Of a stretch of DNA of 64,000 nt, positions 6,000-57,330 are shown one piece after another. The DNA is taken from the IMG/VR virus record IMGVR_UViG_3300027749_002876, positions 62,001 through 126,000 of that record; one strand, given 5' to 3'. How positions within the stretch are numbered: the first letter of the stretch is position 1; each line of letters starts with the position of its first letter. Both the position numbers and the translations under genes were made by a program. The notes below the pieces were generated by a model that made no database searches, was not told the origin of the DNA, and worked only from the letters and a program-made list of their open reading frames with translations.

Positions 6000-6587
6000 A
6001 TGAGTCTAGTCCCAATGGTAATCGAGCAAACCGCTAAAGGTGAGCGTAGTTACGATATATACAGCCGTCTATTGCGCGACCGTGTTATTTTGCTAGAAGG
6101 CGAAGTACATGATCAAATGGCCAATCTTATTGTTGCCCAACTCTTGTTCTTAGAGTCTGAAGGTGACAAAGATATATCAATGTACATCAATAGTCCCGGT
6201 GGTTCAGTTACAGCAGGTATGGCAATCTATGATTGTATGCAGTTCATTGCTCCCGACATTCACACTATTGTTATGGGTCAAGCATGTTCAATGGGTAGCT
6301 TACTTGCACAAGCAGGTGCTAAAGATAAACGATTTATGTTGCCAAACGCACGACATATGATTCATCAACCTTCTGGTGGCGCCCGTGGTCAAGCAACTGA
6401 TATGTTGATTCAAGTGGAAGAAATGCTGGCAATGAAAAAGAACCTCACACAAATCTATGTTAACCACAACAGTGCAGGCAAGACATTCGAACAACTAACT
6501 GCTGATATGGAACGTGATAACTTTATGTCTGCACAACAAGCATTAGCATATGGTCTAATCGACAAAATCATCGATAAACGCAGTTAA
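6000..6587 (+). CDS. clpP: ATP-dependent Clp protease proteolytic subunit
   Basis: LVPMVIEQ...[18 protein letters not shown], catalytic ACSMG / MIHQP / ERDNF. Confidence 0.98.
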
Positions 6588-6659
6588 ATACGCTTTACCC
6601 ATCTTGTAGTCAGTAATTTACTAATCATAAATACAATATGACTAACAGATGGGTAACCC

Positions 6660-9563
6660 ATGGATGAATTAGATCCGCGTAAATTATACGAACTTTCGGA
6701 ATCTCTCAACGAACTTACCGGTACAGTAAAATATACCGGCACAGCCATGCAGTCCATGTTGGGACCTCAGGCTGAAGCAAACAAGAAATTAAAAAACTCA
6801 GGTAAAAAACGTGCCAAGGTTGAAGAACAGGCGGCTGAACAACAAGCAAAGCAGTTAACCAAACAGGAAGAATCTCAAGCAAAACAGAAAAAAATGCTTG
6901 ATGATGAGTTACGATATCGCGGCTACGCAATAGATGCAACAGGTAACTTAACTAAAACAACCACATCACTAAGTGGTGCTCAAAAGCAAGCACTAGAATC
7001 ATTGGATAAGCGTATTGCCAAAGAGCGTGAACTTGCTGAAGTAATTAAAGATCCAGTCAAATCATTTAGAAGCATATCAAGCAGTATAAACAGCCTCGAC
7101 GGTGTTATGGGCCAGATGCAGGAGAAGATGTTTGAGATGACTGGTAAGAGCGTGCCAATGGCAGCAGGTCTTATCGCAGCCACAGCAGTTGTCGGTGGAG
7201 TAGTTAAAGCCGCAACCGGAATGGCTGACTCACTATATAAAGGTGAACGTGGTGCTAAAGTTGGTGCTAAAGCAGTTAAAGATTTAAATGATTCAGTAAC
7301 TAAAGCCGCATATGGTATCAGTGCGGCACTGATGTTTATGCCCGGATTGGGAATTGTTGCTAAAGTATTAGGAGCCGCAATTGGGCTGTTTTCTTTGGCA
7401 ATGGAGGGTTCCACAAAACTAATAGAAATGGGTGCAGAGTATAACGATAAGGTATACGATTCATTCAATAAATTAAGCGAGACGGGGTTAATAACAGCTA
7501 AGGGCATGAGTGGTGTTAGTAACACCATGGAAAAGCTAGGAGTAACAAGTGCTGAAATAGAGAAGATGAATTCTCTATTAGCAAGCAACTCAAAAGACTT
7601 AGCATTATTTGGTGGGACTGCGGCAGGTGGATTAGAAAAATTCACAGAAGTTGCCGGAACTATTTCACATCCAGCAAGTGAATTAAACAAAAAATTAATG
7701 TTGCTTGGTATATCAAGTGACGAACAAAGAGAACATACATTAAAGTACATGGCTTTGCAAACACGCATGGGCATGACGCAAGGCAAGACACAAGCTGACC
7801 TAGTTAAAGGTTCTGTTGCCTACATGGAAGAACTAGATAGAATTGCTTCTATCACTGGAATAGGTCGTAAAGAACAAGAAGAAGCACAGAAGCAGGTAAT
7901 GGCTATTGAAGAATTACGTGCGGCAATGTTCCAAGCTGAACGTAGTAGTGATACTAAACGACAAAAAGAATTAGAAACAGCATTTAAATACTCTAGCCGA
8001 TTGATGGCTGAGGGTAGAAAGAAAGAAGCGGCCGGTGTTGCTAAGTATTATGCCGCAGGTAAAAATGTTGTTGACAGTGATTCGGCAATGGCAGCACAGA
8101 ATAGTGCAGGTGCTATTAAAGCTATTGGTGAAGGTAAAGAAGGCGAAGATGTTTATCAAGAAGGCATCAAGAGTGCTAAAGAATCTGCTATACGTACAGC
8201 AGGCACTAAGCGAATTGGCGGTGATGTGTCTAATCAAATTGGAGACTTCAATGCTACACTAGATGCTATTAAACGTAGTGAGAAGTCGCAAGAGGAAATG
8301 AAGAAACTGGGTCTAAGTCCAGAAGCATATGCTAAAAAACTTCAAAAAGAAAAAGAAGAAAAGCCTGATCCAAATTTAGCAAAGAATGTTGATGCTATGC
8401 AGATACAGCAGAAGGCTGGTTTGACAATGGATCAAGCGGCAAAGGCAATGGATGGTGCAGGTCTTGCAATGGCATCATCAGTTAAGGCATTTAATGAGGC
8501 AGTGAAATTATTTAATCAAGCTTCTGGTACTGGCCCAGCACAAGGAGCCGCAGTAGAGAAAGCTAAACAAGCAGATACAGCGGCATTGAATAAACAACAA
8601 GCCGCAATGGATGCTAATAAGAAAACGCAAAATGATCCAACTGCAACAAAAGCACAAAAAGAATCTGCACAAAAATCAGAGGATGATGCTAATAAAGAGT
8701 CAATGAAGGCAATGGCGGCTAAGAGAGAAGCCTTCCTAAAAGAACAAAATGAATTACGTGAACTAAACAAAAAACAACGTGGTTCCGGCAAAGAAGTATT
8801 CAAGACCATGGAAGATGCACGAAAGGCTGGAGCCGCACCAAAAGCTGAAACAGCTCCGACGGCGGCTGCACCAAAAGCTGAAACAGCTCCGACGCAGGCT
8901 GCTAAGCCGGCATCATCACCTACGCCATCACCCGGTGCACCTTCAGAAGGTCACAGTGAAGGGGGTACAGAAAAATCAGCACCACCGGCTGCGCCAACAT
9001 CGGCTCCACCAGTTTCATTAAAATCAAGCTCAACCAAAACTGATTTATTAATAGCAAATGAACCAGTCACTGCTGATAAGCCATTAAGTAAAACACAAAT
9101 GTCAATAATTGAGCTTGGTATTAGTCAAGGAAATAAATTCTCTGACATGGTAATGCAAAAGTTCAATTCTCAAATGTTTGGTGCCAAACCAGTAGCTCCA
9201 AATTCTAAACCTGTGGGTGATGTTGAAATTCCAATTGACAAGGCTGCGACCGGGGGAGTATTTGACGGGCCGGGTAAGAATTCAGTAATGCTAAACAATA
9301 GCACTATGGCTGCAAATGATATATTAGCTTCACTCAGAGAATCATTTGGTAGTGTTCAAAAGAAATCAGTTGAGAGTGAATTACCAAAATTAACTAAATT
9401 TAATACAATGACTTCTTCAAGTAGAGGTATTTCAACAAATAGTTCAATGGACATACTAGAAAAATTTACTGACATTATGGAACAGAAACTATCCGACGTT
9501 ATAGATGCTATATCGGATAACAATAACATTAAAGAAGAAATCTTACTTTACAGTAAAGCATAA
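6660..9563 (+). CDS. Long alpha-helical virion protein (tape-measure/baseplate-hub-like)
   Basis: 967 aa, Ala/Lys/Glu-rich coiled coil, hydrophobic Gly/Ala segment, Pro-rich linker, late promoter upstream. Confidence 0.5.
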   Translation: MDELDPRKLYELSESLNELTGTVKYTGTAMQSMLGPQAEANKKLKNSGKKRAKVEEQAAEQQAKQLTKQEESQAKQKKMLDDELRYRGYAIDATGNLTKTTTSLSGAQKQALESLDKRIAKERELAEVIKDPVKSFRSISSSINSLDGVMGQMQEKMFEMTGKSVPMAAGLIAATAVVGGVVKAATGMADSLYKGERGAKVGAKAVKDLNDSVTKAAYGISAALMFMPGLGIVAKVLGAAIGLFSLAMEGSTKLIEMGAEYNDKVYDSFNKLSETGLITAKGMSGVSNTMEKLGVTSAEIEKMNSLLASNSKDLALFGGTAAGGLEKFTEVAGTISHPASELNKKLMLLGISSDEQREHTLKYMALQTRMGMTQGKTQADLVKGSVAYMEELDRIASITGIGRKEQEEAQKQVMAIEELRAAMFQAERSSDTKRQKELETAFKYSSRLMAEGRKKEAAGVAKYYAAGKNVVDSDSAMAAQNSAGAIKAIGEGKEGEDVYQEGIKSAKESAIRTAGTKRIGGDVSNQIGDFNATLDAIKRSEKSQEEMKKLGLSPEAYAKKLQKEKEEKPDPNLAKNVDAMQIQQKAGLTMDQAAKAMDGAGLAMASSVKAFNEAVKLFNQASGTGPAQGAAVEKAKQADTAALNKQQAAMDANKKTQNDPTATKAQKESAQKSEDDANKESMKAMAAKREAFLKEQNELRELNKKQRGSGKEVFKTMEDARKAGAAPKAETAPTAAAPKAETAPTQAAKPASSPTPSPGAPSEGHSEGGTEKSAPPAAPTSAPPVSLKSSSTKTDLLIANEPVTADKPLSKTQMSIIELGISQGNKFSDMVMQKFNSQMFGAKPVAPNSKPVGDVEIPIDKAATGGVFDGPGKNSVMLNNSTMAANDILASLRESFGSVQKKSVESELPKLTKFNTMTSSSRGISTNSSMDILEKFTDIMEQKLSDVIDAISDNNNIKEEILLYSKA

Positions 9564-17516: not shown

Positions 17517-17756
17517 ATGTTTGATAAAATGACACAGCAATTAAACATACAGACACTGGGTAGGGGTAAAAAGAATTTTACTATCTCTAAACAAGAATTT
17601 GAAGATTTTTGCAAAGAGTTTCTATTTGAACAAATTAAAGGTGACTATAATATAGGTGAAGCCTTTTGTCAAAAGTATGACGAACCAAATTATGTACTAA
17701 GTATATTACCCAATCATAGTGCAAAAGCACACATTAAAAAGTTTTACGTAAAATGA
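17517..17756 (+). CDS. Hypothetical protein
   Basis: In-operon ORF. Confidence 0.6.
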
Positions 17757-18073
17757 CACACTTAGTTACAGAAAATTGCATTAAATGCAAGCACACAGAC
17801 TGTGTGGACGTTTGCCCGGTAGATTGTTTTTATGAGGGGCCTAACTTTCTTGTCATCAATCCCGATGAGTGTATCGATTGTGCAGTATGCATTCCTGAAT
17901 GTCCTGTAGGAGCAATTAGTGCCCAAGAAGATGTGCCCAATGCTACTATTTGGTTTGACATTAATATGAGGTTAAGTAAGAAATGGCCCGTCATCACTAA
18001 GAAAAAATCTGCATTGCCTGATGCGGAAGAGTGGAAAGATAAACCTAACAAAATTAATTTACTAGAAGAATGA
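17753..18073 (+). CDS. fdxA: 7Fe ferredoxin (FdxA-type)
   Basis: [22 protein letters not shown]...[12 protein letters not shown]. Confidence 0.93.
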
Positions 18074-18591
18074 AACAAAAATTTATTGACTACTACATGG
18101 ATGTAGCAGAACGAACAAGCAAACTATCAAGTGCTATTCGTAGACAAGTGGGAGCAGTTATTGTGAAAGATAATCGTATTCTCAGTTATGGTTACAATGG
18201 TATGCCAACTGGATGGGATAACACTTGTGAATACAAAGACTATATGAGCGGTGATGCCGGGGGTTGGCTTGACGCAAACGAGATTGAAGAACGATGGCCC
18301 TTTGAAGAATATAGTGAACAATATGAATCTAATCGCAGATATCGGTTAGTCACTAAGGACGAAGTACTCCACGCTGAAAGTAATTCAATTGCTAAAGTGT
18401 CCGGGTCAAATGAATCTAGCGAAGATGCTACACTATTCGTAACAACTGCACCCTGCATTCATTGTGCTAAGATGATTTTTCAATCTGGTATCAAAACTGT
18501 ATTCTATCGTGATACTTACCGCGATGAAACAGGGATAGAATTTTTAACAAAAGGCGGCGTTAGTGTCACCAGATACCCAGTACAAGACTGA
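18070..18591 (+). CDS. dCMP deaminase
   Basis: GYNG, HAE, PCIHC. Confidence 0.92.
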
Positions 18592-18763
18592 AATCTCAAT
18601 TGGCTATGGTCAATTGAAGCCAGTCATTGACTGGTGTCAGAGAAACAGCGTCTATGATTGGGGATATGATTGTAAATTCCCTGCAGGACGTGATGCAGGA
18701 CTATATGATTTTTACTTTGAAACTGAGTCAGACTATTTAAACTTTATACTGTGGAAAAAATGA
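18563..18763 (+). CDS. Hypothetical protein
   Basis: In-operon ORF. Confidence 0.55.
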   Translation: MSPDTQYKTEISIGYGQLKPVIDWCQRNSVYDWGYDCKFPAGRDAGLYDFYFETESDYLNFILWKK

Positions 18764-19035
18764 AATACTATACCTTTTACCGTGAGAATAATAATTTTGA
18801 TGATATCTTAAACGATGCTATGCTCAAAAAATCTATCGATGAGATCATACGATGGTCTCAATATCTAATTATTGGGTTACATGAAACTACAAAGAATAAT
18901 CAAAATAATAGTTACATCACATTAAAATATGGTGATGAAATGAAAAATAATTTAGTTAAAGATTATAGTCCTATACCCGGGGTCGATTATATCCCTAAGG
19001 AAGATTTATCTAGATATAAACAAGTAGTTGAATAA
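18760..19035 (+). CDS. Hypothetical protein
   Basis: In-operon ORF. Confidence 0.55.
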   Translation: MKYYTFYRENNNFDDILNDAMLKKSIDEIIRWSQYLIIGLHETTKNNQNNSYITLKYGDEMKNNLVKDYSPIPGVDYIPKEDLSRYKQVVE

Positions 19036-19037
19036 AC

Positions 19038-19784
19038 TCAATAAGCTAATGCAATCATTTTAGCTTCAGGAATACGAGTTTTTGTATTCTTGCTACCCAA
19101 TAAGACCACTGTTCGTATACCGCGTTCAGTGGTCAACATCATTACAATACATCCACCACTCTTAGTAATCCATCCGGTCTTACTAACAATAAACTCATAA
19201 CCATGACCGACTAAAGTGTTGGTATTGTTAAAGAATGCAGTTTTCTTTTTATTGATTGCCATTTTCATAGAATCTTTATTACTATCTTCATTGATGGTTT
19301 GATACTTGCTTGCGGCAATAACAAGCTTAACTAAATCTTCTGCGGTACTTACATTGAATACACTTAATCCAGTAGGCTCAAGATATTTTGTGTCATTCAT
19401 TTCTAATGACTTAGCCTTCTCATTCATTGCCTGTATACAGGCAAATGAGCCCATTGGGTATTTTTGACAAAGTAATGTTGCGGCTTGATTGTCTGATTTG
19501 ATGATGGCAAGACTAATTAAGTCACGCCTAGATAGTTTTTTATTATAGAGTTTTGTAGAGATAATCTCATCTAAATCTTGCTGTGCATCTAACACAACCA
19601 TAACAGTCATAAGTTTAGTAATGCTTGCAACACTACGAATATCTTTGGTGTGATTGCCATCTAATATTTTGCCATTACCGTCAGCTACTAGCCAGGACTG
19701 TGCTGTTAATGGTACTACTTGTGCATGTGCTCCAAAATGCAAGAGGCACAACAATATAAAAATTCTAAGCATTCTTTTATCCAA
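19038..19784 (-). CDS. D-Ala-D-Ala endo/carboxypeptidase (peptidase S11, PbpG-like)
   Basis: Signal peptide; ASITK (SxxK), SDN (SxN), KTG. Confidence 0.92.
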   Translation of the reverse strand: MDKRMLRIFILLCLLHFGAHAQVVPLTAQSWLVADGNGKILDGNHTKDIRSVASITKLMTVMVVLDAQQDLDEIISTKLYNKKLSRRDLISLAIIKSDNQAATLLCQKYPMGSFACIQAMNEKAKSLEMNDTKYLEPTGLSVFNVSTAEDLVKLVIAASKYQTINEDSNKDSMKMAINKKKTAFFNNTNTLVGHGYEFIVSKTGWITKSGGCIVMMLTTERGIRTVVLLGSKNTKTRIPEAKMIALAY

Positions 19785-19791
19785 TCATTCA

Positions 19792-20115
19792 TTATAGGCT
19801 CAAAGATTTCTTATTTGGCATAACTTTAAAATGTGTGCCTGTACCAACCACACAACTTAAATCACCCTTAGTAGCAATTATAGTCCAATTACCATCTATA
19901 GGGTTGACCCAAAGAGACATCGTAGATTTGGCAACATCGTCTGCTTTGCCTATTAAAATCGGAGACTCTTTATAATTTTTCTTTAGTGTATTAAATAATA
20001 CAATAGTATTGTAACATGGCAATTCAATATTTACAATCTCTTCGGACACAATAGATTCTTCAGCGTATGCTAATGAAACTAAAAGTGCCATTAGTAGGGT
20101 AATAATTGTTTTCAT
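19792..20115 (-). CDS. Secreted hypothetical protein
   Basis: Signal peptide; WTII...SCVVGTG. Confidence 0.7.
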   Translation of the reverse strand: MKTIITLLMALLVSLAYAEESIVSEEIVNIELPCYNTIVLFNTLKKNYKESPILIGKADDVAKSTMSLWVNPIDGNWTIIATKGDLSCVVGTGTHFKVMPNKKSLSL

Positions 20116-20179
20116 TAGTTATTTATATTATGGAATTTATCTACATAGTTTTACACCCATATTTCTAAATAAATACCAT

Positions 20180-20950
20180 ATGAAAACATATCGTTCTATT
20201 TTTGTGAGTGATGTACATTTGGGTACCAAAGATAGTCAGGCTGATAAGTTAAATAATTTTTTAAAACACAATAGTTGTGACACACTGTATTTGGTAGGTG
20301 ATATTATAGATGCGTGGCGTATACAACAAAACAGGTGGCGATGGAAACAAAGCCATACCAATGTGGTTCGTAGAGTATTAGGTCATGCCAAACGTGGCAC
20401 TAGAGTTGTTTATATAGCAGGTAATCATGATGAGTTTCTTAGGCCAATGATTCCATATGGATTCAGTTTTGGTCTAGTAGAGATTCATAATCAAATAGAA
20501 CACATAGGTGCAGATGGCAAACATTATCTAGTAACCCACGGGGACTTGTTTGATGGTATCACAAGACTAGCACCGTGGATAGCATTTTTAGGAGACAAAG
20601 CATATGATATCATTTTATCGCTCAATAGTAGGTTCAATTGGATACGTCATCGTTTTGGTTTTGGGTACTTTAGTCTTAGTAAATATCTTAAATCAAAAGT
20701 AAAAAAAGCAGTAGATTTTATTTTTCATTTTGAAAAGAACCTAGCTGCCTATTGTAAAAAGCGAGGGTTTGATGGTGTAATATGTGGTCACATACACCAA
20801 GCAGAAATCAAATACATTGATGGGATTCGATATATGAACGACGGTGATTGGGTAGAATCCTGTACGGCACTAGTAGAACATCATGATGGCAAGTGGGAAA
20901 TAATTACATGGACTAAACAAAATGACAAAAACGATATTGATAATCACTGA
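20180..20950 (+). CDS. PlcP-like phospholipase C (LpxH/COG2908 metallophosphoesterase family)
   Basis: YRSIFVSDVHLG, YLVGDIID.W, GNHDEFLR, THGD.FD, ICGHIH, NDGDWVESCTALVE. Confidence 0.85.
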   Translation: MKTYRSIFVSDVHLGTKDSQADKLNNFLKHNSCDTLYLVGDIIDAWRIQQNRWRWKQSHTNVVRRVLGHAKRGTRVVYIAGNHDEFLRPMIPYGFSFGLVEIHNQIEHIGADGKHYLVTHGDLFDGITRLAPWIAFLGDKAYDIILSLNSRFNWIRHRFGFGYFSLSKYLKSKVKKAVDFIFHFEKNLAAYCKKRGFDGVICGHIHQAEIKYIDGIRYMNDGDWVESCTALVEHHDGKWEIITWTKQNDKNDIDNH

Positions 20951-21941
20951 TAACTTACCGGAGCAAATAAATGGCGTGGTCACGACCTACACGAATATTG
21001 AGACATGTGCGGTTTTGGATGGTTATAAGTTTGTGGTGTTGCATCCCGGGTGGTTCAGCTACATTGATTGTCCTAGCTACAACGAAGTCAAGATTGCCTA
21101 TCCAAGGAACTTGGGCCAGAAGGTTAAGGAGATCGATCCGGATTATATCCATATCGCCACAGAAGGTCCTCTTGGTCTGTGGGGTAGAAAGTATCTGTCA
21201 CTATGTAATATTAGGCACAATACCGCTTATCATACTAAATTTCCTGAGGGTTTAAAGAAACTATTTGGCATACCTGAAAGTCTCACTTGGGTATTTGTTC
21301 GTTGGTTTCATAAGCACAGCGGTAAAGTATTGACTACTACAGACTCAATGGTTCAAGAATTACGTAAGCATGGATTCACCGGTGAAGTTGTTTCTTGGAC
21401 TAGAGGTGTTGACAGAACAATATTTGATCCATCTCTTAGAGAAGAATTACCTAGCAAGTATTTGCTATGTGTTAGTCGTGTTAGCAAAGAAAAAAACCTA
21501 GAAGATTTTTTTAAATTAGATTATTTCGGGTATCAAAAGATCATGGTAGGTGATGGCCCCATGTTAGAGACCTACAAAAAGAAATACCCAGATGTACACT
21601 TTACTGGATTTAAAACAGGAGTAGATTTAGCTAGGTATTATGCTAATGCTGATGTGTTTGTGTTTCCTAGTCGTTGGGAAACATTTGGTTTAGTAATGAT
21701 TGAATCAATGGCGTGTGGTACCCCTGTCGCGGCTTATCCTTGTCAAGGCCCCGTAGATGTTATAGATGAAGGTGTTACTGGTTGTATGAACAATAATTTA
21801 AAACAGGCTGTGACTGATGCATTAGCGTTAAAAAGAGAAGTAGTACTGAGTGGGAGCAACAGATGGACTTGGCAAAAGGCATGGGAAATATTTAGAGATA
21901 ATCTAGTCCCTGTCACATCATTGTCACATAATATGCGTTAA
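20922..21941 (+). CDS. GT4 glycosyltransferase (Agt-like diacylglycerol glycosyltransferase)
   Basis: TD..P.Q.NGVV.T, HIATEGPLG, YHTKFPE, RVSKEKN, FPS..ETFGLV..ESMACGTPV. Confidence 0.85.
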   Translation: MTKTILIITDNLPEQINGVVTTYTNIETCAVLDGYKFVVLHPGWFSYIDCPSYNEVKIAYPRNLGQKVKEIDPDYIHIATEGPLGLWGRKYLSLCNIRHNTAYHTKFPEGLKKLFGIPESLTWVFVRWFHKHSGKVLTTTDSMVQELRKHGFTGEVVSWTRGVDRTIFDPSLREELPSKYLLCVSRVSKEKNLEDFFKLDYFGYQKIMVGDGPMLETYKKKYPDVHFTGFKTGVDLARYYANADVFVFPSRWETFGLVMIESMACGTPVAAYPCQGPVDVIDEGVTGCMNNNLKQAVTDALALKREVVLSGSNRWTWQKAWEIFRDNLVPVTSLSHNMR

Positions 21942-21991
21942 ATAATTATGTGCCATGGTGGCACACAATTAACACCCACAAGGAGAAACAC

Positions 21992-22645
21992 ATGAGATTA
22001 GATGACTTAGCCGTAAGATTAGTAGCAGTAGAAGCCAAATTAGCATCACTAACTGGAACATCAGTTAACACAGACAATGCAAAAAACATTGATGAACTAG
22101 ACGCAAGACTATCAGTAGTTGAAGCACAAATCGATCAGTTAGTAGCTGTAAAAACTCAAGAGCATGTTGACGCTATTGTTGCCGCAGCCGCACAAGCAGT
22201 TGAAAGCATACAAGCCGCAGTTGCAGAAGTAGTTGCACTTTCTCCAAGTGCTGACCACGCAGAAGCCGCTGACATCGTTACTGACGTTGTTACAGCACAA
22301 GCAGAAGCAGATGCAGTTGATCACCCAGAAGTTGCTGACATTATTTCAGCCGCAGTTCAAGCAGTTGTTGCCGCAGAGCCAGAAGTTGTTACAGATCCAG
22401 TAGCAATCACAGCCGCTATCATGGAAGCAGTTGCTGAAATGCCAGCTCCGGCCCCAGAAGTTGCAGAAGAAGTTGCAGCCGCAGTTGCTGAAGTTATTGC
22501 AGCCGCAACAGGTGAAGAAGTTGCTCCAGAAATACACGCTGACATCGTTGAAGCAGTTGCAGCTCCTTCAAATCAAGCACTAGATGATATCGAAGCACGT
22601 TTGGAAGTTGCAGAAGCTAAAGTTGATACATTATTAGGAAAATAA
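21992..22645 (+). CDS. Very acidic Ala/Val/Glu-rich protein with three coiled-coil motifs
   Basis: AGGAG SD before ATG at 21992; LD(D/E)(L/I)..RL...EA repeats. Confidence 0.75.
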   Translation: MRLDDLAVRLVAVEAKLASLTGTSVNTDNAKNIDELDARLSVVEAQIDQLVAVKTQEHVDAIVAAAAQAVESIQAAVAEVVALSPSADHAEAADIVTDVVTAQAEADAVDHPEVADIISAAVQAVVAAEPEVVTDPVAITAAIMEAVAEMPAPAPEVAEEVAAAVAEVIAAATGEEVAPEIHADIVEAVAAPSNQALDDIEARLEVAEAKVDTLLGK

Positions 22646-22685
22646 TAGCTAGCATTTGATGTTGGTTTTCAACCTTTTTTAAATC

Positions 22686-22752
22686 GGGCACAAGATAGAG
22701 TGCCGCTGGATTCTCGTAACCAGTACTAAGGGTTCGGTAGGGCTCTTTTTTA
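22686..22752 (+). ncRNA. Candidate structured RNA: two hairpins plus a terminator
   Basis: GGCAC/GTGCC, GCTGG/CCAGT, then AGGGTTC-GGTA-GGGCTCT and a T-tract. Confidence 0.5.
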
Positions 22753-22802
22753 TTGGATAGTAGTAAGACAATTTACCTACTACCTAGCATAAATACAATA
22801 CT

Positions 22803-23621
22803 ATGAAAAAACTACTACTATTATTATTTGTATTTATTAGTTCAGTTGTCAACGCACAATTACCAACTAGTAATGTACCGCTACCCGCTGATATTGCCGC
22901 AATTAAGAAAGCAAACGTTCTTATTGTAGCAATGACCAAAAAAGATAACCCTCCCTTCTTCAGTGGTAGCGAGGATGATATCCATGGTCTTGACGTTGAA
23001 ATTGCACGAAGAATTGGAGTAATGCTTGGAGTTCCTGTACAGTTTAGACGAGATGCAGAAAGTTTTGCAGAAGTTGTAGAACAAGTTCGAGACGGGCGTG
23101 CCGATGTTGCAGTTAGCAAATTATCTGTAACCGGCCCTAGATTGCAAGTAGTTAGATTCAGTGATCCTTACATCAAACTAAGACAAAGTTTAGTTATCAA
23201 TCGATTATGGCTAAGCCAAAATAGTCAAGGTCGTGAAGTATATCAAGTCATTAGAAATTTCAATGGTAAAATAAGTTTCATTCGCAACTCAAGCTATGAC
23301 ACATTTGCACGTACTAATTTCCCTAATGCCACGTTTCTTCCGGAAGATAAATGGGATGTGATTATTGACAAAGTTACACGTGGTGATATTGCAGCCGCTT
23401 ATCGTGATGAATTTGAGATTAAGAAAATTGCTTTTGAAAAACCAGAAGCCGCAATCAGTACAAAGAGTATCACAATCAGTGACAGCGTGGATAACATTGC
23501 TGTTGCGGTAAATCCTAAATCATTACAATTGTTAAGTATTATTAATTATGTTATTAAAAATGAATACAACAATATTGACACTAAGAAGTTGATGGACCGC
23601 TACAAAGCTGAAAAGAAATAA
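22803..23621 (+). CDS. Amino-acid ABC-type periplasmic binding protein (SBP family 3)
   Basis: Signal peptide; PPF, GLDVEIA..I...LGV, D.A.S.LS.T..R...V.FS.PY. Confidence 0.9.
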   Translation: MKKLLLLLFVFISSVVNAQLPTSNVPLPADIAAIKKANVLIVAMTKKDNPPFFSGSEDDIHGLDVEIARRIGVMLGVPVQFRRDAESFAEVVEQVRDGRADVAVSKLSVTGPRLQVVRFSDPYIKLRQSLVINRLWLSQNSQGREVYQVIRNFNGKISFIRNSSYDTFARTNFPNATFLPEDKWDVIIDKVTRGDIAAAYRDEFEIKKIAFEKPEAAISTKSITISDSVDNIAVAVNPKSLQLLSIINYVIKNEYNNIDTKKLMDRYKAEKK

Positions 23622-23630
23622 GGATATAAA

Positions 23631-24905
23631 ATGAAATTTAATTTAAAAAACTTCTTATCTAGTCCGTGGACTATTTTAGGATCAATTATACTTGGAGTAC
23701 TGGCAGGAATATATGCTCCTGCACAAAGTATGAACTTTGAAAGTGTTGGAGGAATTTACATTAGCTTGCTTAAAGTTGTGGTAATACCTTTCTTACTTGC
23801 AACTATTTTGGTTGGTGTTATCAGCCTACTACAAAAAGAAGGCAGTGCCGCAATGATACGCAAAATTATCATTGGCTTTGTTGGCAGTATGTTCTTGGCC
23901 GCAGTTATTGGTGTTGGTACTGTTGCACTGACCGGCAGCGAAATGACTCCTGCAAAACAAGCACAACTTGGTGCTATTGTCAACGATAAAGAATCTGGTA
24001 GTGATCTTAACATAACACTAAAAGAACCAATGCCTGCCGCACCGCACGTTGACCCAATGCAAATGGCACAGAAGTTTATTCCAGAAAATATTTTTAATAC
24101 ACTAGCCGCTGGCGAGAGTTTAAAGATTGTTATCTTTTGTTTAATCTTTGGTATTGCATTAGGTAACTTAAAAACTACTGGTCAAGAAATGCTAGTGGAT
24201 ATATTAAAGAGCGTACAACAGGCCAGTATCAGTATTTTTAAATTCTTAAACTACTTTCTACCGTTTGCACTATTGGCAATGATTAGCAGCCAAGTTGGTA
24301 AGGTTGGAGTTGGTATTTTCTTGACCATGGTTGAGTTTATCATGCAACAGGCCATTGGTGGATTGCTTGTTGTTATTGCTGGTACTATTGTTATTTGGCA
24401 ACGTTCAGGACTAAGCTTAATGACTGTTATTAAAGAAACTAAGGAAACATTAATTGTGGCTGTTAGTTCACGCAGTAGTTTAGCATGTATTCCTTATGCA
24501 CAAGAAGCACTGCACAAATTACATTTTGATAGAACTGGTGTAGAATTAACCGTGCCATTAAGTTTTACAGTTAACCGTATTGGTAGTATTGTTTATTACG
24601 CAATTGCCACAGTATTTATTGCCAACATCTACGGTGCACCTATGGGAGTAACTGGTTTGCTGGTTGTATTGTTTGGTAGTATTTTAGCTGGATTAGCAAG
24701 TGCTGGTACAACAGGTATCTTAACAGTTGCTACAGTAGCAGTCGTTTGTGATTTATTAAAACTACCAAGTGAAGCGGTATTAGTATTATTAATTGCAGTT
24801 GATCCGTTAATGGACATGATTCGCACAGCAAGTCATGTACACGGCAATGTGGCAGTAACAGCATTTGTCTGCGACAAAGAGATAACAGATAATGGACAAA
24901 CTTAA
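23631..24905 (+). CDS. Dicarboxylate/amino-acid:cation symporter (GltP/SDF family)
   Basis: LLK..VIP, IPENIF, SSRSS, PL..TVN, AVDPLMDM.RT..HV.GN. Confidence 0.92.
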   Translation: MKFNLKNFLSSPWTILGSIILGVLAGIYAPAQSMNFESVGGIYISLLKVVVIPFLLATILVGVISLLQKEGSAAMIRKIIIGFVGSMFLAAVIGVGTVALTGSEMTPAKQAQLGAIVNDKESGSDLNITLKEPMPAAPHVDPMQMAQKFIPENIFNTLAAGESLKIVIFCLIFGIALGNLKTTGQEMLVDILKSVQQASISIFKFLNYFLPFALLAMISSQVGKVGVGIFLTMVEFIMQQAIGGLLVVIAGTIVIWQRSGLSLMTVIKETKETLIVAVSSRSSLACIPYAQEALHKLHFDRTGVELTVPLSFTVNRIGSIVYYAIATVFIANIYGAPMGVTGLLVVLFGSILAGLASAGTTGILTVATVAVVCDLLKLPSEAVLVLLIAVDPLMDMIRTASHVHGNVAVTAFVCDKEITDNGQT

Positions 24906-25506
24906 AGATTTTCTTTTAAGTTTATTAACCTATATAGGCGAGAGTCCATTTCGTTTATTCACAGTTGTATTCCTTTGCATAATTGGATTTGGCGGCTGGA
25001 TTGTCTATTCAGAAAAAGATGCCTTTATGGCCAGCTATCGTGCCCAACAAGCACTGCCTCGAATGAATGGTGAGTATGAAAAAGCCACTAACTTTATACT
25101 TAAAAACAGCCAAGCAGAATTAATAGCCATATTTGAAGTCAATACTTTATTAAACACTAGAAAATTGGTATACTTTGCCACACGCAAAGGCGGACAAGAA
25201 AAGGGGATGTATGGCACTGATGTTGGCTTGTTGACCAAAAACTACGACAACAATAACGATGTGATTTCCATGATGTCAGGCAAGATACCTTGCCAAACTT
25301 ACGAGAAACCTCAAAGTATGATGGGATTCATTTATGTTGAAAAAGGCGTCAAGTGGATGTGTCGTATCAGCGTTCCAGCAGAACCTGGCATATTTATTGG
25401 ACAAATATCAGTAGGTTGGACTGAGGTACCTATAGATAAAATGCCCGTCGATACACAACAAACTGTAATGATTGTGGCTAGCGGCTTACTGTATAACAAG
25501 AAATGA
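24892..25506 (+). CDS. Putative T4-t/T5-type holin (one TM plus periplasmic GAF-like domain)
   Basis: Single TM near residues 22-39; C-terminal C...P....IGQISVGW resembles T5 holin C.P....AGYIGIAW. Confidence 0.5.
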   Translation: MDKLKDFLLSLLTYIGESPFRLFTVVFLCIIGFGGWIVYSEKDAFMASYRAQQALPRMNGEYEKATNFILKNSQAELIAIFEVNTLLNTRKLVYFATRKGGQEKGMYGTDVGLLTKNYDNNNDVISMMSGKIPCQTYEKPQSMMGFIYVEKGVKWMCRISVPAEPGIFIGQISVGWTEVPIDKMPVDTQQTVMIVASGLLYNKK

Positions 25507-53292: not shown

Positions 53293-53368
53293 TGGCATCC
53301 CGGGTAAGCCTCGAACTTACAACCCCTGGTTTTGGAGACCAGTGCTCTGCCAATTGAGCTACCGAGAT
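53293..53368 (-). tRNA. tRNA-Trp(CCA)
   Basis: Cloverleaf, encoded CCA end. Confidence 0.93.
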
Positions 53369-53375
53369 ATATTCT

Positions 53376-53597
53376 TTATGCGTTTTTTCTAATACGCTTG
53401 AGGTATTCTCTACCCACAAGTCCTGCTTCAATTTCTTGAAGTGCAGTCACAATAGGACCTGCTTTAGAGACTAGTGTAGAACGATGTCCACGCTTTAACT
53501 CTCTTACTCTATGTGAAGCGATAAGAACTAAATCAAATCGATTACCAACCATATTAACGGCGTCTTCACTTGTATATCTTGCTCTGCTTTCAGTCAT
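53376..53597 (-). CDS. rpoZ: RNA polymerase omega subunit
   Basis: AR.T.EDA...VGNRFDLVLIAS.R.REL...TAL.EI..G. Confidence 0.9.
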   Translation of the reverse strand: MTESRARYTSEDAVNMVGNRFDLVLIASHRVRELKRGHRSTLVSKAGPIVTALQEIEAGLVGREYLKRIRKNA

Positions 53598-53608
53598 TTT
53601 CTTCCTTT

Positions 53609-54208
53609 TTAAAATTCAAACATTAATCTTTTCATTGTCTCAAAATAAATTTTAGGTCTTAATGCTAATGCAGGCCTTAATGTTAATACAACTCTTTCAT
53701 TATCTGATTGTGAATTATCCCAATCGTGAAATATTTCGGTATTAAACAATATTGCTTCATTGGGCTGAGCCACCATTGATTTAACCGGGGAGTGTTTAGT
53801 TTTATCAAATCCAACACATTCCCTTGATCCATTATGTTTAGGATCGATTTCATACATAGATAAATCTTCATCACTATACCAGCTGGTCACACACTTATCA
53901 TCTAATATTTTAGAAGTATAATTTATACTAACATGGTCAAATGATCCGTCTTTATGAGCCCTATATGTCATATGCGGCTTTGATATGAATAACGATACCC
54001 GATCAATTTCTAATGGTGGAAATTTTAAGGGAATCATACTCAGCATTTTTTTAGATTCATCTGGCTGTAATTTATAATGAGTAAAATCTTCATTTATCTT
54101 ATAAATATCCGGGGTGATTACATTGCAATAATCTATTATAGACTGTATACCGGCGTGAGTATATCTAATATAATAAGGACTACAATCTTCAATGATTTCG
54201 TATTTCAT
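53609..54208 (-). CDS. Fe(II)/2OG oxygenase- or cupin-like protein
   Basis: AHKD...LFNT...H...N...R..L..R. Confidence 0.6.
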   Translation of the reverse strand: MKYEIIEDCSPYYIRYTHAGIQSIIDYCNVITPDIYKINEDFTHYKLQPDESKKMLSMIPLKFPPLEIDRVSLFISKPHMTYRAHKDGSFDHVSINYTSKILDDKCVTSWYSDEDLSMYEIDPKHNGSRECVGFDKTKHSPVKSMVAQPNEAILFNTEIFHDWDNSQSDNERVVLTLRPALALRPKIYFETMKRLMFEF

Positions 54209-54210
54209 GC

Positions 54211-54864
54211 TTACTCTAAAAATAATAGGTTGTTATTTTTAAATACATCTCTCCAGTATCCTGTGTTAGGTATCAGAGCCCATAATTTAGTATTTTCAAA
54301 AACTATCAATGTTCTATTTTTTTTTGTTTGATTTAATGCGACCGCAACCCCATTAAACCAGGGATGAAAATCATCTCCTAGTAATAATCCGGTATCGGAT
54401 TCATACTTTTCAATATCATGTTTAACATCCAATAATGTATGTGAAGCATCAATAAAGGTAAGATCGTAATGTTTTACTTTCTCAAAATCTTTGCTAGAAG
54501 TAGGGTGTACATTTATATTAGCATACATTTCTTCACCTATACAAAATCTAAATGCATCATGCCATCCTGTAGCTTTTGCAATTTCTCTTGCATCAGCATA
54601 CATAATAGGATCGCCTAGTGCAAATTGCAAATTTTCAAACTCAATATTTAATAATGATTGGCTAGAAACAATTCTAAAATTATCAACTATATCCATGCTT
54701 ACAGAAGAATTTTTACCTCTATAGAGGGCAGTAGTAGAACTACCCAAAAAACAACCTATTTCTAAAATAGAACCATTATCAGGAACATAACCAGCCAATG
54801 TTGAAAGAATTATTAATTCTTTTTCGAGCATCCAACCCGGAATGTTTACATTGTATTTTTGCAT
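54211..54864 (-). CDS. Class I SAM methyltransferase
   Basis: PGWM, LEIGC..GSST, FIDASH, GDD. Confidence 0.85.
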   Translation of the reverse strand: MQKYNVNIPGWMLEKELIILSTLAGYVPDNGSILEIGCFLGSSTTALYRGKNSSVSMDIVDNFRIVSSQSLLNIEFENLQFALGDPIMYADAREIAKATGWHDAFRFCIGEEMYANINVHPTSSKDFEKVKHYDLTFIDASHTLLDVKHDIEKYESDTGLLLGDDFHPWFNGVAVALNQTKKNRTLIVFENTKLWALIPNTGYWRDVFKNNNLLFLE

Positions 54865-54884
54865 ATTGTATTTATGTTTATATT

Positions 54885-54960
54885 TGGAGCGGGAAATCGG
54901 GTTCGAACCGACGACATTCACGTTGGCAACGTGATGCTCTACCAACTGAGCTATTCCCGC
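54885..54960 (-). tRNA. tRNA-Gly(GCC)
   Basis: Cloverleaf. Confidence 0.95.
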
Positions 54961-54967
54961 ATATTCT

Positions 54968-55042
54968 TGGTACATCGACACGGTTTCGAACCGCGGACCC
55001 TCTCCGTGTAAAGGAGACGCTCTACCCCTGAGCTATCGATGC
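54968..55042 (-). tRNA. tRNA-Val(TAC)
   Basis: Cloverleaf. Confidence 0.95.
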
Positions 55043-55052
55043 ATATTTTTAT

Positions 55053-55232
55053 TTAACCCCCTTGAGAGCTGTCTTTAACTTCTGTTTCTCTAGCAATTTT
55101 TTCAAACGCTTCATCTTCATTCTTTTGATCCTCAATCATTCTTGGATCAGGCTTACGAAAGATTTTGTCATAGTTGTTTGCATATTCTTGTTGACTGACA
55201 CTGTATGGTCTTGGACTAGAACCTTTGCTCAC
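55053..55232 (-). CDS. Small protein, 59 aa (MSKGSSPRPYSVSQQEY...DKIF), GTG start, not in the ORF track
   Basis: GTGA overlap with the upstream ORF. Confidence 0.6.
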   Translation of the reverse strand: MSKGSSPRPYSVSQQEYANNYDKIFRKPDPRMIEDQKNEDEAFEKIARETEVKDSSQGG

Positions 55233-55399
55233 TTCTTGTCCCCTTTACCCCCACTGTATGATCGCAAACCTTCTTGTGCAATCTTAGCATAGCTACGCAA
55301 AAATGAACCACGTACATGTGGATCAAGAATTTGAGCGGCTGCAATCTTTACTAGCTTACCGATTTTAACGGCTTTTGGGTCATAACCTCTGCATGTCAT
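55229..55399 (-). CDS. Small hypothetical protein
   Basis: AGGA SD before MTCRGYD. Confidence 0.6.
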   Translation of the reverse strand: MTCRGYDPKAVKIGKLVKIAAAQILDPHVRGSFLRSYAKIAQEGLRSYSGGKGDKK

Positions 55400-55422
55400 A
55401 CTATCTTCCTTTGTTAAAAACT

Positions 55423-55499
55423 TGGTCGGAATAGTAGGATTCGAACCTACGACCTCTTGCTCCCAAAGCAAGCGCACTACCAGGCTGTGCTACACTCCG
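55423..55499 (-). tRNA. tRNA-Pro(TGG)
   Basis: Cloverleaf. Confidence 0.95.
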
Positions 55500-55503
55500 T
55501 AAT

Positions 55504-55577
55504 TGGATGCGGGTGACAGATTCGAACTGCCGATGCACCTGGCTTATGAGACCGGTGTGGTGACCACCCAACCCGCG
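55504..55577 (-). tRNA. Atypical initiator-like tRNA(CAT)
   Basis: CGCGGG 5' end, C1:A72 mismatch, truncated D-arm. Confidence 0.7.
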
Positions 55578-55581
55578 TATT

Positions 55582-56268
55582 TCACAATTCTGCATAATTA
55601 GTAATACTTGGTGGTTTAGCAAACGCATCCACATACATAATCTTACTGTTATCTTTTATTGTTAATTTATTAATGTAATTATACACTACTTCAAAAGTTT
55701 GTTTGTATATTTCGGGATTATCGTATGTAAAATGCGGAGCTATAGCTGTTGCTATTGCACCTTTGTCATTGTGTTCGGCAAATGCCCTCATCATGTGAGC
55801 TTGCATTGCTTTGCTTCCTGCATACCCCGCATAACTTGTCCATTCATTACGATTGAACTTTACTGCCATATATGATATAATAAAAATAATTTTACTATTT
55901 TCATTCATTCGTTTTAATGCTTCTACACCCAAAACATGAGGTATATGGCATGCAAGTCTTATATTCTCTTCCCATCTTTTTAAGTCAACTACACTAGTAG
56001 AAGTAAAGCAATTTTCATCATTTGGATAAGAACCTGAATTGGAATTAAAAAGAATCATATCAACAGTATCAACATCTTTGGTCACTTCATTAAATGCTTC
56101 TACTACACATTGAACACTATCAAAGTTTGCTTTGATATCATGTGGATGTCCTGTATTGTAATTCTTGTGAGATACAATATAAACGTTATGACCATCAGTA
56201 CGCATACGCAATACTAGGTCATTACCAAACTTACCGGGTTCACCTCCCCCTATTATCACTATGTTCAT
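55582..56268 (-). CDS. Short-chain dehydrogenase/reductase-like protein
   Basis: IGG...G.FG, YAGSK (YxxxK). Confidence 0.75.
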   Translation of the reverse strand: MNIVIIGGGEPGKFGNDLVLRMRTDGHNVYIVSHKNYNTGHPHDIKANFDSVQCVVEAFNEVTKDVDTVDMILFNSNSGSYPNDENCFTSTSVVDLKRWEENIRLACHIPHVLGVEALKRMNENSKIIFIISYMAVKFNRNEWTSYAGYAGSKAMQAHMMRAFAEHNDKGAIATAIAPHFTYDNPEIYKQTFEVVYNYINKLTIKDNSKIMYVDAFAKPPSITNYAEL

Positions 56269-56288
56269 ATTATGAGTCCTCAAGTATT

Positions 56289-56364
56289 TGGTGGAGGATA
56301 CCAGGATCGAACTGGTCACCTACTGCTTGCAAAGCAGCCGCTCTCCCAAATGAGCTAATCCCCC
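56289..56364 (-). tRNA. tRNA-Ala(TGC)
   Basis: Cloverleaf with G3:U70. Confidence 0.95.
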
Positions 56365-56438
56365 ATGTAGAAACACACTTGATATAGTAGCAAAAGCTAT
56401 CACGGATGAACCCGAGTTTAGTCAAATATGTTTTTATA
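56365..56438 (-). ncRNA. Candidate small RNA with a long closing stem
   Basis: AUAUAAAAACAUAUUUGA/UCAAGUGUGUUUCUACAU. Confidence 0.5.
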
Positions 56439-56515
56439 TGGTGCCCCAGAGGAGACTCGAACTCCTAAAATTTGGCTTCTAAGACCAACACGTATACCAA
56501 TTCCGTCACCAGGGC
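56439..56515 (-). tRNA. tRNA-Leu(TAG) with short variable region
   Basis: Leu-type D-arm, 77 nt. Confidence 0.88.
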
Positions 56516-56516
56516 A

Positions 56517-56605: not shown

Positions 56606-56690
56606 ATATATCTATTTATATGTCAACTATCTTTGGATAAGAAGAACTCAGACGTATGATAACCATTTACCGGTTAGTTATTACAGAGGT

Positions 56691-57227: not shown

Positions 57228-57244
57228 CTAGTATTTAATAACAT

Positions 57245-57318: not shown

Positions 57319-57330
57319 ATAAATATATTT

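Follow-up and report, generated by a model that had tools for sequence, protein, structure and literature searches.

A putative virus-borne copy of the bacterial PlcP-Agt lipid renovation cassette in a freshwater T4-like jumbo phage record

The window analysed here, a stretch of 64,000 nucleotides, is part of the 524-kb record of a freshwater T4-like jumbo phage. It includes a pair of overlapping genes that, with the elements around them, make up the following features (window coordinates).

20150..20179, + strand: cassette promoter region, with ATAAATA at 20169-20175 and a sigma70-like TTTACA-N18-TACCAT at 20150-20179
20180..20950, + strand: plcP-like gene, metallophosphoesterase of 256 aa, predicted phospholipase C releasing diacylglycerol
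20922..21941, + strand: agt-like gene, GT4 glycosyltransferase of 339 aa, predicted diacylglycerol glycosyltransferase
21910..21927, + strand: tandem repeat resembling a Pho box, CTGTCAC-ATCA-TTGTCAC, within the 3' end of the agt-like gene
21950..22645, + strand: third gene, open reading frame for an acidic Ala/Val/Glu-rich protein with coiled-coil-like ends, function unknown
22728..22757, + strand: terminator-like hairpin and T-run, consensus match only

The original prediction, made without database searches, had described overlapping COG2908-type metallophosphoesterase and GT4 genes with full motifs, and this held: the open reading frames are exactly as it described them and the catalytic motifs are kept. 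Because the two reading frames overlap by 29 nt, the agt-like gene is probably co-transcribed and translationally coupled with the plcP-like gene.

The phosphoesterase matches the Pfam family Metallophos (PF00149, E 2e-12) and contains the complete set of calcineurin-like metallophosphoesterase motifs, namely DxH, GD, GNH[D/E], H, GH and GHxH. In an alignment of 28 family sequences, of which the window protein is the first row, the metal ligands D11, H13, D41, N82, H83, H120, H204 and H206 are invariant. The protein shares 54.4 % identity with PA3219 of P. aeruginosa and 49.6 % with the S. meliloti PlcP orthologue. The named PlcP and Agt anchors were taken from mislabelled chromosomal records in a plasmid collection, and the S. 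meliloti anchor was chosen on two grounds: no other homologue is present in its record, and it is 46.6 % identical to PA3219, in agreement with the published value of 46 % (PMC8528852). An order-level search of 201 genomes made for the anchors gave a prevalence of 141/201. In a tree rooted on LpxH, the phage phosphoesterases form a clade (support 99) nested between the gamma- and alphaproteobacterial PlcPs, and LpxH is set apart from the PlcP-type proteins by a long, fully supported branch. Among the LpxH-fold metallophosphoesterases, gene 1 falls in the PlcP clade, and all of its metal ligands are intact. The identification of the pair as PlcP-Agt in the original prediction is also supported, by identity, tree and LpxH cutoffs for the phosphoesterase and by identity and tree for the GT4; the phylogeny of PlcP versus LpxH that it had proposed as a check groups the enzyme with PA3219 and the S. 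meliloti PlcP, not with LpxH. A median dN/dS of approximately 0.05 indicates purifying selection on the phosphoesterase, and for both it and the GT4 there are thousands of relatives of 80–98 % identity on phage contigs. Very probably the product is a phospholipase C that removes the phosphate head-group from membrane lipids, a prediction from sequence, as activity data are lacking for every phage copy.

An alternative is that gene 1 encodes a true LpxH (UDP-2,3-diacylglucosamine diphosphatase) that, with an LPS glycosyltransferase, alters lipid A or LPS synthesis. Homologues are annotated as LpxH by JGI and in GenBank, KEGG-based virome surveys place viral lpxH in LPS biosynthesis (PMC9611531, PMC10653327), and the closest solved fold is that of LpxH. 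The predicted fold (pLDDT 88.9) is LpxH-like with a helical cap, and the best 25 structural matches are LpxH structures that align over the full length, cap included. However, identity to LpxH is 20–22 %, over 120 residues, and the window protein scores far under the cutoffs of both LpxH equivalog models, with 45.7 bits for NF003743 (cutoff 134) and 33.5 bits for TIGR01854 (cutoff 190). Both plcP copies of the record score approximately 43 bits with the LpxH HMM (cutoff 134). With this HMM, one Pseudomonas genome was found to contain a true LpxH (332 bits) and, as a separate paralogue, a PlcP-like gene (55 bits), and the Bradyrhizobium, Azospirillum and Caulobacter genomes contain only the PlcP-like gene and no true LpxH. 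The tree also speaks against this alternative, as does the partner GT4, which is orthologous to Agt1, a proven diacylglycerol glucosyltransferase; the linkage to a consumer of diacylglycerol that marks PlcP genes (agt, pgt or btaAB) is present as the overlapping Agt-type gene. A true LpxH is largely refuted by the sequence evidence and all but excluded. The PlcP reading would offer a concrete and easily tested role for a gene that annotations of phage genomes and viromes now wrongly call LpxH.

The product of gene 2 matches the Pfam families Glyco_trans_1_4, Glycos_transf_1 and Glyco_transf_4 (E 3e-23 to 2e-12). It shares 37.6 % identity over its full length with Agt1/PA3218 and 37–44 % with plcP-linked GT4s, the range being 37–43 % for those directly downstream of plcP in bacterial loci; members of the Agt clade are GT-B GT4 enzymes of approximately 330–350 aa with <25 % identity to other GT4s (10.1101/2021.03.25.437072). 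In the tree it falls inside the plcP-linked GT4 clade, but on a long branch. The protein has a Gly-rich N-terminal motif, H104 at a position identical to that of the reference His104, and the motifs SRVSKEKN and FPSRWETFG...E (E-x7-E), for which the Agt references have GRVAxEKN and FPSxTDTFG with a His104-Asp256 dyad. The acidic catalytic residue is Glu253 (Trp-Glu), whereas Agt1 and GTcp have Asp (Thr-Asp). Glu253 is kept in 4/4 aligned phage GT4s and is the residue found in classical GT4 E-x7-E enzymes. No assay is available, and sequence considerations indicate that an enzyme with Glu253 is likely to be functional; its donor or acceptor specificity may possibly differ. The median dN/dS of 0.16 again points to purifying selection. 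Gene 2 is a member of the plcP-linked, Agt-type GT4 clade, and it very probably makes a phosphorus-free glycolipid from the PlcP product, though no lipid product has been shown and the transfer from a UDP-sugar to diacylglycerol is inferred.

A UDP-glucose dehydrogenase gene was considered as general support for the synthesis of a glucuronosyl lipid and was rejected. No such gene was found in the record or in 80 IMG/VR loci, and a gene of this family adjoins the GT4 gene in only one group of related contigs, where it lacks the C-terminal domain.

The arrangement of the two genes was compared across bacterial and viral loci. Of the 80 nearest loci in bacteria, approximately 60 have a GT4 homologue directly downstream of plcP, and PA3219 and PA3218, which overlap by 4 nt, adjoin cyaB. 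Among the related viral loci with enough flank to be informative, a glycosyltransferase gene follows the phosphoesterase gene in 78/78, GT4 in 23 (directly downstream) and GT2 in 55 (directly downstream in 54 and slightly further on in one); none of these 78 loci has both types and none lacks a glycosyltransferase. Loci of the Mosig type are of the GT4 type in 44 cases and of the GT2 type in 14, with neither in 13. The GT2 partner, though commoner than GT4 in the lineage, is small and not homologous to it, and no recognisable link to diacylglycerol glycosylation was found for it apart from a weak GT21 match (26.9 bits). The pair in the window reproduces the conserved bacterial plcP-agt cassette. 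No report of a phage PlcP was found in the literature searched.

This arrangement bears on a second alternative, in which the phosphoesterase is a phospholipase that attacks the membrane for lysis or host shut-off and the glycosyltransferase is unrelated to it, serving, for example, DNA or protein glycosylation. In its favour, a late-type element precedes the plcP-like gene and glycosyltransferases with other purposes are common in phages (PHROG matches). Against it, the glycosyltransferase gene follows in every informative viral locus, the same GT4 partner occurs in bacteria and glycosylates diacylglycerol there, the two genes overlap, and the phosphoesterase has neither a signal peptide nor a lysis-cassette context. 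We consider this alternative very unlikely.

The original prediction assigned control of the cassette to a phage late-type motif and saw no Pho box. The first part held. ATAAATA, which resembles the core of the T4 late promoter, ends 4 nt 5' of the plcP ATG; across the whole record, 8-mers of this type are enriched 15–21-fold upstream of genes, and the motif lies ≤100 nt upstream of 114 of 537 crude gene calls, mostly 0–29 nt from the start. The second part held only for the 64 nt before the window's plcP, where a search with the Pho consensus found no Pho box. The repeat at 21910-21927 is 22 nt upstream of GTG 21950 and 64 nt upstream of ATG 21992; its second half can also be read as a -35-like TTGTCA, followed after 17 nt by AATTAT. 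Both strands of the 524 kb hold just three strict matches, this one included (null expectation 0.7). In 586 kb of related loci, 36 strict matches were observed and approximately one was expected; 18 of them lie 21–33 nt before plcP, including the record's second plcP copy, and a further 10 precede homologues of the third gene. The half-site CTGTCAC and the 11-bp spacing of the repeats match the PA3219 promoter. The strict pattern is conservative and not a general detector, as it matched only 1–2 of 82 bacterial plcP promoters. The reason was seen in the PA3219 promoter, where every box combines a strong with a weak half-site.

By their similarity to the consensus, the Pho-box-like repeats at the -35 position in many relatives suggest activation by host PhoB under phosphate starvation; there are no binding or expression data. 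The window's own cassette is inferred to be driven by the phage ATAAATA-type element or by the sigma70-like promoter. Since only these elements and no Pho box precede it, expression of this plcP could perhaps be independent of phosphate status. If the ATAAATA element is truly late, it is also possible that expression comes too late to feed DNA synthesis.

The start of the third gene is likely to be ATG 21992 rather than GTG 21950. Its protein has no Pfam, NCBIfam or PHROG family match, and its sole matches are virus clusters of hypothetical proteins. Homologues lie close to the cassette in 12/80 viral loci, and in an unrelated phage, G211, the gene has been inherited together with the phosphoesterase-GT4 pair. 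The hairpin at 22728..22757 could conceivably mark the end of the transcription unit; terminator-like consensus matches are no commoner here than in shuffled sequences.

All 24 runs that hold the sequence are from freshwater or lake water. A read test of a suspected assembly junction gave mixed results, and the 524-kb record may be one genome or two. It carries the second plcP copy, with its Pho-box-like repeat before the gene, in part B, where a GT2 gene lies at C1:183.3–184.1 kb, and encodes PhoH; pstS was not found in the record. The accessory island around the cassette includes genes for a PbpG-like endopeptidase with a signal peptide, a small secreted protein, a solute-binding protein and a symporter, and the islands of relatives also hold OMP beta-barrel and LysM proteins. 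A megablast search of the region against deposited phages gave no match. The possibility that part A of the record is the 162-kb phage G211 was rejected, as only approximately 4 % of G211 matches the record at the nucleotide level. A 348-kb contig assigned to a metagenome-assembled genome was also examined as a possible mis-binned phage; this too was rejected, the contig being in a 3.9-Mb genome with its GT4 homologue on another contig.

Our main reading, to which we assign a probability of about 0.6, is that a virus here carries its own copy of the bacterial PlcP-Agt module for membrane lipid renovation. It is based on sequence; the chemistry, the benefit and the control are inferred. During infection, cytoplasmic PlcP would cleave host phosphatidylethanolamine or phosphatidylglycerol to diacylglycerol and a phospho-head-group, and the GT4 would use a UDP-sugar to convert the diacylglycerol to glycosyl-diacylglycerol, keeping the bilayer intact and avoiding a build-up of diacylglycerol. 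Host phosphatases would free phosphate from the head-groups and this would help to cover the cost of replicating a genome of approximately 350 kb in phosphorus-poor lake water. The bacterial PlcP and Agt functions and the precedent for Pho boxes in phages have been described (PMC4796936, PMC8528852, PMC13691135, 10.1101/2021.03.25.437072, PMC10976474). That the virus remodels the host membrane is likely, though inferred. The claim of the original prediction that genome synthesis is fed by phosphorus mined from the host membrane is still only inferred; phosphorus scavenging is plausible, with indirect support from the Pho-box-like repeats and the freshwater origin.

A third alternative retains the biochemistry and places the benefit in envelope remodelling rather than phosphorus supply, with superinfection exclusion, resistance to grazers or membrane-active compounds, or an envelope prepared for assembly or lysis as possible gains. 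The cassette sits in an accessory island of envelope-directed genes, which fits equally well, the window copy has a phage-type element and no Pho box, and lipid renovation is known to alter susceptibility to phages, predators and polymyxin (PMC9804370, PMC9938194, PMC9457565, PMC8528852). Against it stand the Pho-box-like repeats before plcP in many relatives, the freshwater habitat, and the Mosig plcP homologue, which adjoins a phosphate ABC transporter gene. Envelope remodelling as the benefit seems unlikely, though both benefits could apply together.

Production in lakes and oceans is often limited by phosphorus, an element of which phage replication needs a great deal. Each copy of a 350-kb genome contains approximately 0.7 million phosphorus atoms and, by our own rough estimate, the phosphorus in the membrane phospholipids of one cell equals several to tens of such genomes. 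A bolder version of the phosphorus reading, which we advance tentatively and do not favour on balance, is that phages abundant in freshwater, and some from the sea, possess a lipid renovation module whose Pho boxes connect it to the host regulator of phosphate starvation, and that infection of a phosphorus-starved cell would convert host phospholipids to glycolipids, with the freed phosphorus spent on a very large viral genome. If this were true, the module would add a new functional class to the auxiliary metabolic genes, the 'lpxH / LPS biosynthesis' genes of virome surveys would largely be misread PlcP genes, and the acidic protein whose gene is preceded by a Pho box would be a further component of unknown role. 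With its Pho-type boxes and with GT4 and GT2 as interchangeable partners, the cassette provides a natural experiment on the viral rewiring of a host stress module.

In enzyme families and gene order, the cassette resembles the bacterial PlcP-Agt operons (PA3219-PA3218, plcP-agt of SAR11 HTCC7211, plcP-agt-dagK of Burkholderia, and SMc00171 of S. meliloti), and the junctions are tight or overlapping in both, by 4 nt in P. aeruginosa and 29 nt in the phage. It differs in that it is found in phage genomes, in that the window copy has an ATAAATA element and no Pho box before plcP, and in that the phage GT4 has Trp-Glu for Thr-Asp and is replaced by GT2 in most members of the lineage. The phage unit also includes an extra conserved gene with a Pho-like box before it and has no dagK. 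LpxH belongs to the same superfamily as the product of gene 1 and has the same fold, in which a helical cap that binds lipid is joined to a metallophosphoesterase core, but the predicted substrate of the phage enzyme is a glycerophospholipid and not a UDP-linked lipid A precursor.

Homologues in the PlcP clade are also present in cultured phages, namely Mosig_00120 of Pelagibacter phage Mosig EXVC030M (47.5 % identity), which the tree places as the sister of the phage clade described here, and a gene of Synechococcus phage S-SRM01 (37 %). Both were deposited as LpxH-type ('UDP-2,3-diacylglucosamine diphosphatase'), no functional comment on them was found in the announcement paper and, unlike the window cassette, neither has an adjacent glycosyltransferase gene. 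Uptake is the step served by the phage phosphorus genes known so far (pstS, phoA, phoH). The cyanophage pstS and phoA genes, which have Pho boxes and are controlled by host PhoB (PMC10976474), are, like the cassette, viral genes of host origin that are linked to phosphorus and have Pho-box-like sites upstream. However, their products import or release external phosphate, whereas the phage cassette would reuse phosphorus from the membrane of the cell itself and restore that membrane with glycolipid, a virus-encoded strategy different from uptake that would alter what infected cells contribute to lipid and phosphorus pools.

The original prediction described overlapping metallophosphoesterase and GT4 genes with full motifs, and ORF calls and Pfam searches confirmed this exactly. 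The plcP-like and agt-like ORFs share 29 nt, every metal-binding residue of the phosphoesterase is invariant in the family alignment, and the GT4 includes H104, the Gly-rich N-terminal motif and the E-x7-E motif. Since the proteins belong to known Pfam families, retain intact motifs, have thousands of metagenome relatives at 80-98% identity and show a low median dN/dS across related viral loci (~0.05 for the phosphoesterase and ~0.16 for the GT4, both approximate with dS near saturation), both genes are real and maintained.

Features of the window and, where marked C1, of the whole record
17,753-25,506: accessory island of envelope/transport genes of cellular type
17753-18073: ferredoxin
18070-18591: dCMP deaminase
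19038-19784, minus strand: PbpG-like D-Ala-D-Ala endopeptidase with signal peptide
19792-20115, minus strand: small secreted protein
20180-20950, plus strand: plcP-like ORF, 256 aa, Pfam calcineurin-like metallophosphoesterase
20922-21941, plus strand: agt-like ORF, 339 aa, Pfam GT4 (Glyco_transf_4 and Glycos_transf_1)
21910-21927: Pho-box-like repeat, 22 nt upstream of the third ORF (21950)
21950-22645 (likely start 21992): third gene, acidic Ala/Val/Glu-rich protein with coiled-coil-like ends
22803-23621: family-3 solute-binding protein
23631-24905: sodium:dicarboxylate-family symporter
53,293-63,157, minus strand: tRNA array, 27 genes covering most amino acids
C1:172,924 and C1:177,012: record junctions, both outside the window
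C1:184,212-184,973: second phosphoesterase copy (locus L002), 90% amino acid identity to the window copy

The phosphoesterase is named LpxH in databases, which would imply a role in LPS synthesis. Its structure, predicted with pLDDT 88.9, is built like that of LpxH from a metallophosphoesterase core and a helical cap, and the top 25 Foldseek matches are LpxH structures, at 17-20% identity. However, the sequence evidence contradicts this function. The LpxH equivalog models gave 45.7 and 33.5 bits against cutoffs of 134 and 190, the sequences of solved LpxH match weakly (E about 3e-4) and only within the N-terminal half, and the LpxH proteins of E. coli and Pseudomonas share 20-22% identity with the window protein over ~120 residues. 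The 80 nearest bacterial relatives, from Alpha-, Beta- and Gammaproteobacteria, are 50-57% identical. Named PlcP anchors were drawn from chromosomal records mislabelled as plasmids. The P. aeruginosa anchor adjoins cyaB, and the next gene, labelled 'glycosyltransferase family 1', overlaps the anchor by 4 nt; the pair is PA3219-PA3218, the characterised plcP-agt1 operon (PMC8528852). The S. meliloti record includes one homologue only, and this anchor was considered valid because its 46.6% identity to PA3219 agrees with the published figure for SMc00171. The window phosphoesterase shares 54.4% identity with PA3219 and 49.6% with the S. meliloti protein. With the LpxH model, two distinct genes emerged in one Pseudomonas genome, a true LpxH at 332 bits and a PlcP-like one at 55 bits, the genomes of Bradyrhizobium, Azospirillum and Caulobacter yielded the PlcP-like gene alone (46-54 bits), and that of Roseibium gave no match; the phage copies score 43 bits.

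A maximum-likelihood tree with LpxH as its root was used to examine whether the enzyme groups with LpxH. In it, the phage phosphoesterases form one clade (support 99), sister to the homologue from Pelagibacter phage Mosig and one MAG sequence (support 96), and this group nests between the PlcPs of Gammaproteobacteria (PA3219) and those of Alphaproteobacteria (S. meliloti), not with LpxH. The predicted PlcP assignment thus held; on every sequence measure the enzyme is a PlcP family member, its activity being inferred from sequence alone, and a true LpxH function is all but excluded.

The GT4 is 37.6% identical to Agt1 (PA3218) over its full length. A GT4 homologue, 37-43% identical to the phage protein, lies directly downstream of the plcP homologue on the same strand in ~60 of 80 bacterial loci, in line with the frequent adjacency of plcP and agt that the original prediction cited as established; this order corresponds to the 'type 2' neighbourhood of PMC4796936. 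Hence, the phage pair copies a conserved bacterial cassette. In the phage enzyme H104 occupies the identical place, and the UDP-sugar motifs read SRVSKEKN and FPSRWETFG, the latter having Glu instead of the Asp of Agt1 and GTcp. In the GT4 tree, the phage clade is fully supported, has a long stem and falls inside the plcP-linked GT4s, weakly (SH-aLRT 80) beside those of Gammaproteobacteria, Agt1 included. We read the protein as an Agt-type enzyme, though activity is inferred and it may have come to prefer a different donor or acceptor.

Close relatives of the phosphoesterase were found in >590 IMG/VR contigs, and 80 loci were fetched. Directly downstream was a small GT2 in 54 and a GT4 in 23; one further locus has a GT2 ~0.7 kb further on and two were cut off too early to judge. 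None of the 80 (the two uninformative ones aside) had both types or lacked a glycosyltransferase altogether. This obligatory pairing contradicts the alternative that a lysis phospholipase happens to lie beside an unrelated glycosyltransferase, which is very unlikely. The GT2 is generic, matching PF00535, passing the GT21 model weakly (26.9 bits) and reaching at best 61 bits against an NCBIfam cutoff of 182. With the Mosig protein as seed, a scan recovered 109 further viral contigs, 71 with enough flank, and the downstream gene was GT4-type in 44, GT2-type in 14 and neither in 13. In Mosig itself (locus L004, 2903-4738) the plcP homologue bears an LpxH-type hydrolase annotation, has no glycosyltransferase neighbour and lies next to, and divergent from, a phosphate ABC transporter (PstS-type) gene. 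The two look like a pair of phosphate-stress genes in this cultured pelagiphage; the Mosig genome announcement does not discuss them. In a group of related ENA scaffolds (L013-L015) the GT4 is followed, at ~6054-6845 of each locus, by a 263-aa UDP-glucose/GDP-mannose dehydrogenase-family gene without the C-terminal UDP-binding domain, and no gene of this family was found in the record or the 80 IMG/VR loci.

G211 is an unrelated phage of 162 kb that has terminal repeats. It matches the record in only two blocks: the plcP, GT4 and third genes, at 77% nucleotide identity, and next to them the genes for the solute-binding protein and the symporter. Hence, the cassette moves between lineages of phages. 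Homologues of the third gene were found only in viruses, often near the cassette, and their function is unassigned. The cassette was present in 24 public runs, all of them metagenomes from freshwater or lake water.

The window covers bases 62,001-126,000 of a 524,565 bp record. The record has a single T4-type major capsid gene, and by its protein the closest cultured relatives are jumbo myophages (Sinorhizobium phage Phosso, 71% identity; a 348.9-kb Vibrio phage, 70%; PA5oct, 66.5%; GAP32, 65%). How the second phosphoesterase copy should be read, as a paralogue or as an orthologue carried by another phage, depends on the record's structure. Two related genomes may have been joined during assembly, because bases 1-172,923 (~173 kb, part A, which includes the window) are collinear with an arc of the remainder but inverted, at ~78% nucleotide identity, a 4,089-bp direct repeat (99.6% identical) makes the remainder self-closing at ~347.5 kb, near-complete relatives are 349-360 kb, and capsid gene and phoH are present once each, neither in part A. 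Against this, contigs of three runs cleanly bridge the junction at C1:172,924; in a fourth run, a contig begins exactly there and the preceding letters mismatch the record's left flank. The evidence is mixed and the question unresolved. Locus L002 (C1:183,300-185,000) has a 307-aa uncharacterised protein, the second phosphoesterase and then a small GT2, without a GT4. A related genome, G209 (IMGVR_UViG_3300023174_000039, 331.6 kb), carries a partial second phosphoesterase at its extreme contig end (331,143-331,652), 94% similar to the window copy versus 87% for G209's internal copy, a tentative hint that the cassette is a place where assembly of co-occurring strains is prone to breaks or joins.

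Control by a phage late-type motif, with no Pho box, had also been predicted. In an unbiased k-mer count, N-ATAAATA-N was 15-21-fold enriched upstream of genes in the record, with GATAAATA occurring 52 times against 2.5 expected. ATAAATA forms the T4 late-promoter core. It lies mostly 0-9 or 15-29 nt upstream of start codons, and is found 4 nt from the plcP ATG (20169-20175), before the divergent neighbour of plcP (20120-20126, gap 4) and before the solute-binding-protein gene (gap 7). The late-type motif is therefore supported; its timing rests only on analogy with T4. The same plcP upstream region also fits a sigma70-like TTTACA-N18-TACCAT. Upstream of crude gene calls, 37 occurrences lie 0-9 nt before starts, and such proximity suggests either that transcripts have no leader or a very short one, or that the element acts in the initiation of translation and not in transcription.

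A Pho consensus search before the window plcP found no match, as predicted, with TTTACAC at the position of the second half-site, but Pho-box-like repeats are present in relatives and before the third gene. Many relatives have the tandem repeat YTGTMAY-N4-YTGTMAY (e.g. TTGTCAC-ATAT-TTGTCAC) upstream of the TAAATA element at a fixed distance from the plcP ATG, mostly 21-24 nt and in some 30-33 nt, and in L002 a perfect repeat lies 21 nt from it. The strict pattern occurs three times on both strands of the 524 kb (0.7 expected), two of these within the two cassettes, one ahead of the second plcP copy and the other at 21910-21927 in the window. Related phage loci totalling 586 kb gave 36 strict matches, of which 18 are just before plcP and 10 precede third-ORF homologues, in two loci (L118/L119) as a triple repeat. 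The documented Pho-regulated PA3219 promoter has four 7-mers at 11-bp spacing with the same CTGTCAC half-site. Given their rarity, placement and shared half-site, we infer Pho-box-like sites from sequence alone, without evidence of binding. A precedent for phage Pho boxes is cyanophage pstS (PMC10976474).

The selected benefit of the same chemistry could instead be a remodelled envelope or the exclusion of superinfecting phages, a reading favoured by the position of the cassette within an island of envelope genes and by the lack of a Pho box at the window plcP promoter. We consider this unlikely, and lipid renovation with recovery of head-group phosphate remains the best-supported reading (probability about 0.6). 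PlcP would convert host phospholipids to diacylglycerol, the GT4 (GT2 in most relatives) would convert this to a glycolipid, and the head-group phosphate would be recovered. The steps are inferred from orthology and the benefit, mining of membrane phosphorus as originally proposed, from context alone.

The bacterial PlcP-Agt system is already well known. No report of a phage-encoded PlcP or a phage PlcP-glycosyltransferase cassette was found in the literature searched, though papers beyond it cannot be excluded, and virome surveys file viral 'lpxH' under LPS biosynthesis. Compared to its bacterial counterpart, the phage cassette adds viral carriage and a viral promoter, its partners are interchangeable (GT4 or GT2), the catalytic motif of its GT4 is changed, and it has an additional gene with a Pho-like box ahead of it.
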